From positions 12,028,001 to 12,092,000 of the forward strand of contig NC_135667.1 in the NCBI RefSeq assembly GCF_964188315.1: a DNA stretch of 64,000 bases, in the 5' to 3' direction. The translations under genes and the position numbers were made by a program. Source of the DNA: Podarcis muralis. Its lineage: Eukaryota. Position 1 is the first letter of the stretch. Each line of letters opens with the position of its first letter. Of this stretch, positions 17,913 through 17,931 are shown piece after piece. The notes below the pieces were generated by a model. It was not told the origin of the DNA. It saw nothing but the letters and a program-made list of their open reading frames with translations, and did no database searches.

Positions 17913-17931
17913 TAATTACAGGGAGGATAAT
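17913..17931 (-). promoter_or_regulatory. Candidate V2R promoter motif ATTATCCTCCCTGTAATTA (homeodomain-like TAATTA plus GATA-like TTATC)
   Basis: An identical 19-mer lies upstream of V2R-5 (43014-43032). Variants occur at 5842-5860, 25984-26002, 39009-39027 and 52349-52367. Function is inferred. Confidence 0.55.

Follow-up and report, generated by a model that had tools for sequence, protein, structure and literature searches.

A position-locked box 5' of V2R first exons is conserved across squamates and is very probably a promoter element

The window, i.e. the complete 64-kb stretch of DNA that was analysed, carries six V2R genes (V2R-1 to V2R-6), whose first exons encode a signal peptide followed by the residues ...HKYYQPGD.... 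The identity of V2R-2 was assigned by Pfam, with exon 3 matching ANF_receptor and the last exon matching 7tm_3. The coding parts of the six first exons are located as follows:

5330..5545, - strand: V2R-1, coding part of exon 1
17594..17806, - strand: V2R-2, coding part of exon 1
25468..25728, - strand: V2R-3, coding part of exon 1 (from the farthest in-frame ATG)
38511..38756, - strand: V2R-4, coding part of exon 1
43279..43542, + strand: V2R-5, coding part of exon 1
52602..52865, + strand: V2R-6, coding part of exon 1

V2R-3/V2R-4 and V2R-5/V2R-6 are close paralog pairs, representing recent duplicates with alignable flanks, and the window thus holds approximately four independent lineages rather than six. 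While V2R-1, V2R-2 and most genes outside the window begin with CAAG-ATG-G, the other four of the six window genes (V2R-3 to V2R-6) display ATA at the canonical start, at approximately 25674-25676 and 38717-38719 (- strand) and 43333-43335 and 52656-52658 (+ strand); in these four an in-frame ATG is located 33-48 bp further 5', leading to a longer N-terminal leader ahead of the signal peptide. Additionally, long open frames with reverse-transcriptase domains (PF00078) at 15-1490 (+ strand) and 20601-21836 (- strand) represent retroelement copies, one of which sits within the V2R-3 gene region at the place expected for the 7TM exon. In four RNA runs of the organism (tissue unspecified), zero reads were obtained for exon 1 and flanks of V2R-4 and V2R-5 (38300-44299). 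The reads that fell in this interval were confined to approximately 41100-42100, were 95-99% alike, derived from both strands and had many loose ends, and therefore represent transcribed interspersed-repeat copies from elsewhere in the genome.

A sequence-only reading of the window had described a 19-bp motif upstream of all six V2R first exons. All six 19-mers were recovered in place and letter for letter, four on the - strand and two on the + strand, and each is located 5' of exon 1 in gene orientation. With the 4 bp by which alignment extends the motif (see below), the six boxes are:

5838..5860, - strand: V2R-1 box, consisting of the 19-mer (5842-5860) and 4 bp (TCAA) on its 3' side; 414 bp 5' of the H codon of HKYY
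17909..17931, - strand: V2R-2 box, consisting of the 19-mer (17913-17931) and 4 bp; 221 bp 5' of the H codon
25980..26002, - strand: V2R-3 box, a TAATGA variant
39005..39027, - strand: V2R-4 box, the sole window copy with both ATTATC repeats intact
43014..43036, + strand: V2R-5 box
52349..52371, + strand: V2R-6 box

The end of the 19-mer lies 106-296 bp 5' of an in-frame ATG of exon 1, in agreement with the earlier estimate of about 100-300 bp; when measured to the farthest in-frame ATG, this gap amounts to 106 bp in V2R-2 and ranges from 234 to 296 bp in the other five genes. The motif starts 400-418 bp before the H codon of HKYY in five genes but only 221 bp before it in V2R-2, due to a deletion of approximately 190 bp 3' of the box. 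The identity of V2R-2 and V2R-5 at 19 of 19 positions was borne out, and the flanks of this pair align poorly, as had also been remarked. A degenerate pattern covering the six 19-mers, with up to two mismatches allowed, matched six times in the 64-kb window and nowhere further, compared to 0.37 matches expected from shuffles (0 of 100 shuffles reached six), although this pattern was derived from the six sites themselves and the shuffle count therefore shows only the absence of other copies in the window.

Alignment of 17 sites, those of the window included, yields the consensus ATTATC-YYCYCTGTA-ATTATC-AA (approximately 23 bp, i.e. four more than the 19-mer), which carries a direct repeat with ATTATC occurring twice, 15 bp apart. 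The most constant letters among the 17 sites are T2 (16), C9 (15), T12 (16), A15 (16) and A16 (16) and, towards the 3' end, T17 (17), A19 (16) and A23 (16). Each of the six window boxes contains a TAAT-core in the form of TAATTA, TAATGA or TAATTT. A division of the box into two ancient subtypes (TGTAATTA versus TGCAATTA) was considered and dropped, being unsupported by the weak exon-1 tree.

The box is accompanied by four further blocks at fixed spacing. The upstream GATAAACATGTTTTC block of the module, termed block A, is located approximately 60 bp 5' of the box and consists of TGTGATAAACATGTTTTC...TGCAATGTC, with the palindrome AAACATGTTT inside it. The block TGTGATAA(A/G)CATGTTTTC, previously pointed out as common to V2R-1 and V2R-3, is present in both genes at the block A coordinates listed below. 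On the other side, a second AT-rich site (consensus CATAATTAC) follows approximately 10 bp 3' of the box, an O/E(Ebf)-like block TCCCNNGGGA-TTCCAGTG starts 53-57 bp after the box start, and a TATA-like TTAAWAT block, less constant than the other blocks, is found approximately 100 bp 3' of the box. The corresponding features in the window are:

5901..5918, - strand: V2R-1 block A (TGTGATAAACATGTTTTC, palindrome AAACATGTTT), aligned also in Rhineura, Lacerta and Thamnophis promoters
26043..26060, - strand: V2R-3 block A
5824..5832, - strand: V2R-1 second AT-rich, homeodomain-like site, CATGATTAC, ranked ninth among the stretches of the alignment
5796..5805, - strand: V2R-1 O/E-like site, TCCCCAGAGA, with one mismatch to TCCCNNGGGA
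5743..5749, - strand: V2R-1 TATA-like TTAAAAT, which may belong to a core promoter and lies approximately 100 bp 3' of the box

Five perfect TCCCNNGGGA sites occur in 290 kb, three of which occupy the homologous position in a Rhineura, a Gekko and a Notechis promoter, and seven promoters carry TCCCNNGGGA with at most one mismatch at that position, compared to 0.3 expected. Among the window genes, only V2R-1 has an O/E-like site within one mismatch, the site being degenerate in the other five. The three perfect promoter sites are palindromic (TCCCTAGGGA, TCCCTTGGGA and TCCCAAGGGA, at L001 7539-7640, L002 20611-20720 and L009 8814-8900) and are followed by the conserved TTCCAGTG; GGGAATTCC / GGGGAATCCC are also kappa-B-like. 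Furthermore, the promoters of loci L001-L003 and L006 possess a conserved TGAGTG...TTCAAGTCA block approximately 85-100 bp 5' of the ATG, which is not retained in the window genes; it resembles a GTGAGT splice donor or an AP-1-like site, and was considered as the donor of a tiny 5' UTR intron.

V2R-2 represents a natural deletion mutant of this region. Approximately 190 bp present in the other promoters are missing between its box and its ATG (an interval that here spans 17800-17912, - strand; junction CTATAAGT), from just after the O/E-like block to approximately 50 bp before the ATG. The gene has consequently lost the TATA-like block together with most of the presumed 5' UTR; block A, the box and the second site are retained, as is the O/E-like position. 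The exon-1, exon-3 and 7TM reading frames of V2R-2 are still open; if the gene is expressed, these four retained elements would suffice.

To reach relatives of the window genes, squamate V2Rs were retrieved through a protein search with the window exon 3 (39-58% identity). The resulting outside sample comprises ten loci (231 kb) from eight squamate species, Podarcis muralis among them: two loci each from Rhineura floridana and Gekko kuhli, and one each from Lacerta agilis, Podarcis muralis and the snakes Pantherophis guttatus, Thamnophis elegans, Python bivittatus and Notechis scutatus. Employing the six window exon-1 peptides in tblastn, 18 further first exons were identified in these loci, a small sample of promoters that was picked by similarity to one V2R exon 3. 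Both strands of the 231 kb were then scanned, at a threshold of at least 12 bits, with a weight matrix for which the six window sites were the only input. Twelve matches were obtained, eight of which lie on the same strand as the gene and 355-409 bp 5' of the exon-1 H codon (e.g. ATTATCTCTTCTGTAATTA in the worm-lizard Rhineura, ATTACCTTCCCTGTAATTA in the gecko Gekko, GTTATATCTCCTGTAATTA in the lacertid Lacerta and ATTATGTTCTAAGTAATTA in the snake Notechis). These zones constitute approximately 0.2% of the scanned positions, so that approximately 0.03 of the 12 matches would be expected there by chance. Only four weak matches occur away from the fixed promoter position. The box is thus not part of a common interspersed repeat, there being no extra copy in the 64 kb and eight of the 12 outside matches being at the fixed position.

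Of the remaining ten outside promoters, approximately seven were found by alignment to retain a variant of the box where it is expected, including CTGCAATTA in Podarcis and Gekko promoters, the 3' half only in one Python copy and the 5' half only in one Thamnophis copy. The box is lost in a Pantherophis copy and in another Thamnophis copy, and a Python flank is N-masked. The TAATTA core is lost from the sampled colubrid promoters (Pantherophis and Thamnophis), and the box is therefore not indispensable for every V2R. Additionally, a second good box (AGTATTTTCTCTGTAATTA, 18 bits) was observed in Rhineura at L010 9314-9332, 786 bp 5' of exon 1 and approximately 395 bp 5' of the regular copy, which may represent a duplicated promoter segment.

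The degree of conservation was assessed in a MAFFT alignment of 19 promoters, in which the box ranks second among all 19-column stretches (mean information 0.95 bit); the sole higher-ranking stretch is coding (DPLPIL), and the box is thereby first among the non-coding stretches, at a level comparable to that of coding sequence. In cross-species Smith-Waterman comparisons, the segment from -480 to -100 had a mean score of 18.3 (shuffled mean, 10.7), and 51% of pairs exceeded the shuffled 99th percentile. In contrast, the corresponding values were 11.8 and 11.1 (4% of pairs) for intron 1, and 11.4 and 10.6 (5% of pairs) for the segment from -900 to -520. The neutral DNA of these genes is therefore no longer alignable between species while the promoter-proximal segment still is, and the box, as part of that segment, is better conserved than flanking neutral sequence. 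The alignable stretch comprises the whole of the approximately 400 bp down to the ATG, box included; its onset is abrupt at block A, and 5' of about -520 no sequence can be aligned across species. Enrichment of 8-mers was evaluated in outside promoters only (17, with 51 control segments for comparison), and the motif was therefore recovered without input from the window: the top words were TAATTACC, TAATTATC, GTAATTAT and ATTATCAA, TAATTAYC was among those recovered, and further words derive from block A (TGTTTTCT and ACATGTTT) and the O/E-like block (GGGAATTC). A genuine box stands at a fixed position, its conservation across species exceeds the neutral level, and it is under purifying selection together with its neighbours.

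Judged by its sequence and position, the box is very probably a functional promoter element. We consider it likely that the approximately 23-bp box belongs to a proximal promoter module of approximately 130 bp, which has been carried through V2R duplications with its position and spacing under purifying selection, and which predates the split between geckos, lacertoids and snakes. This putative module would open with block A at its 5' end, followed in order by the box, the second CATAATTAC site, the O/E-like TCCCNNGGGA-TTCCAGTG block and the less constant TATA-like block. The TAAT/ATTA cores may be bound by homeodomain factors of the Lhx2/Emx2 type which, together with Ebf at the O/E site, would switch on transcription in vomeronasal sensory neurons, with a predicted transcription start approximately 30-130 bp 3' of the box.

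Known chemoreceptor promoters offer several points of comparison. The defining homeodomain and O/E motifs of odorant-receptor promoters lie no more than a few hundred bp from the start, and the M71 promoter needs both for its activity (reviewed in PMC12547500). AP-2 epsilon peaks of mouse vomeronasal neurons are accompanied by Ebf, Lhx and Dlx motifs (PMC9525060). The V2R module resembles the mammalian odorant-receptor promoters (Lhx2/Emx2, Ebf) in that a TAAT-core and, in relatives, an O/E-type TCCCNNGGGA lie close together just 5' of a chemoreceptor gene, in being AT-rich, and in preceding a gene of the one-receptor-per-neuron kind. However, odorant-receptor promoters have a common motif content with no alignable sequence or fixed spacing between paralogs, whereas the V2R module is alignable throughout and its spacing is fixed to within approximately 5 bp across species; moreover, it concerns another gene family, organ (vomeronasal) and animal group, and its O/E site is degenerate in the window. 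Mouse V1R promoters are conserved by subfamily (Lane 2002; Stewart and Lane 2007; Michaloski 2011, PMC3247230), and similarly to these the V2R promoter travels with duplication, is alignable between vomeronasal paralogs and has O/E-like sites near the predicted start. The pyrimidine run of the box (in the consensus and in V2R-1) also fits the V1R TCTCYCYY consensus, albeit as a short, low-complexity match. In contrast, V1R promoter homology is confined to subfamilies and to rodents while the V2R box spans divergent paralogs and squamate lineages; the two gene families are unrelated, and the V1R promoter work did not cover V2R promoters. The stereotyped homeodomain and O/E arrangement is further reminiscent of the composite Lhx2-Ebf motif of the Greek Islands enhancers (Monahan 2017, PMC5608512), although in the latter the two sites are side by side and are enriched in enhancers rather than promoters, while in the V2R module they are approximately 40-55 bp apart and adjoin the gene. 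Published promoter-motif work concerns odorant receptors and V1Rs (PMC3247230, PMC9668312, PMC12547500); no description of a shared V2R promoter motif, squamate or other, was found in the literature searched, and absence there is not proof. By analogy, these likenesses suggest that, in reptiles, a receptor family unrelated to the odorant receptors may follow the homeodomain and O/E logic of their promoters.

The sequence-only reading had proposed a composite GATA-like/homeodomain element, of which the homeodomain part is the more plausible and the GATA part weak. The homeodomain-like core is the most constant part of the box (AAT at positions 15-17 in 16, 16 and 17 of the 17 sites). When the 5' half is read on the opposite strand, two of the six window sites match WGATAR in full (AGATAA in V2R-3 and V2R-4) and five contain the GATAA core, the other three being GGATAA (V2R-2, V2R-5 and V2R-6); V2R-1 reads AGACAA. 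The 3' ATTATC repeat (TGATAA) is intact in the window in V2R-4 only; T20 and C21 are kept in eight and ten of the 11 outside sites, respectively.

In the clustered protocadherins, a conserved sequence element (CSE) of approximately 20 bp is located at a fixed distance 5' of each variable exon of a tandem array, from which members are chosen stochastically in each neuron. The V2R box is comparable in being approximately 20 bp in length and at a fixed distance 5' of each member of a tandem array, yet its sequence is unrelated, it has no CGCT/CTCF-type core, and V2Rs are whole genes rather than variable exons. It is conceivable, though we regard it as rather unlikely, that the box with its two ATTATC repeats is a V2R-specific selector, bound by a dedicated factor or factor pair, which would govern V2R choice in each neuron in the manner of the CSE and may predate the squamates. 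If that were true, the box would provide the first cis-regulatory handle on V2R gene choice.

Other roles for the conserved letters were weighed against a homeodomain-type proximal promoter module. The AT-rich 3' half of the box (TGTAATTATCAA, together with the nearby CATAATTAC) might itself be a TATA-like core promoter bound by TBP, with transcription starting approximately 30 bp further 3'. The TATA-like block downstream is absent from V2R-2 (by deletion), from Lacerta L003a and from the Thamnophis and Python copies, which leaves the box and its neighbours as the only universally retained candidate core elements. TAATTA is, however, a poor TATA box, the CAATTA, TAATCA and TAATGA variants suit homeodomain cores better, and the O/E-like site would fall 3' of the start, unlike in odorant-receptor promoters; a TBP site is consequently an unlikely explanation.

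That the conserved blocks run on to the ATG would also be in keeping with a box situated within a transcribed 5' UTR, where it would act at the RNA level or in translation, the start being 5' of block A. A start so far upstream would have no conserved promoter, given that conservation begins abruptly at block A. Moreover, the conserved letters are DNA-binding cores (TAAT, TCCCNNGGGA), and there is no evident structure or upstream reading frame, frames across the box hitting stops. We therefore deem an untranslated-leader role improbable, somewhat more so than a TBP site.

It was additionally considered that CT|GTAAT could serve a short leader exon as its 5' splice donor, in view of the ATA at the canonical start in four of the six window genes and the resemblance of GTAAT to GTRAG. 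All six window genes, however, possess an in-frame ATG inside the exon-1 open frame, and five of the 17 aligned sites have lost the GT, three showing GC and two AT in its place, yet preserve AATTA. Copies with GC were encountered twice in Podarcis and twice in Gekko (the fourth, Podarcis L007a, being additional to the 17), and those with AT in Gekko and Rhineura. As the GT varies and AATTA stays, the constraint is on AATTA and not on GT, and the leader-exon idea, for which we see very little chance, was rejected. Finally, a functionless residue of recent duplication or gene conversion, or of an interspersed repeat, is scarcely credible: V2R-3/V2R-4 and V2R-5/V2R-6 are indeed recent duplicates with alignable flanks, but the box occupies the same place in outside squamate loci whose intron and far-upstream DNA is unalignable, and copies away from V2R 5' flanks are absent from the window and amount to the four weak matches in the 231 kb outside it.

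The manner in which a vomeronasal neuron picks a V2R gene is poorly understood, and the short, position-locked box of the proposed promoter module offers a concrete and testable target, both for mutation in reporter constructs and as bait for the binding factor. The box may also be used to annotate V2R start regions and to anchor first exons in squamate genomes, where these are often missed. Several public squamate V2R gene models begin at exon 2 or 3 (among them L007 17383, L002 10001 and L003 10001), the first exon missed by these models being located 1.3-3 kb upstream by tblastn.
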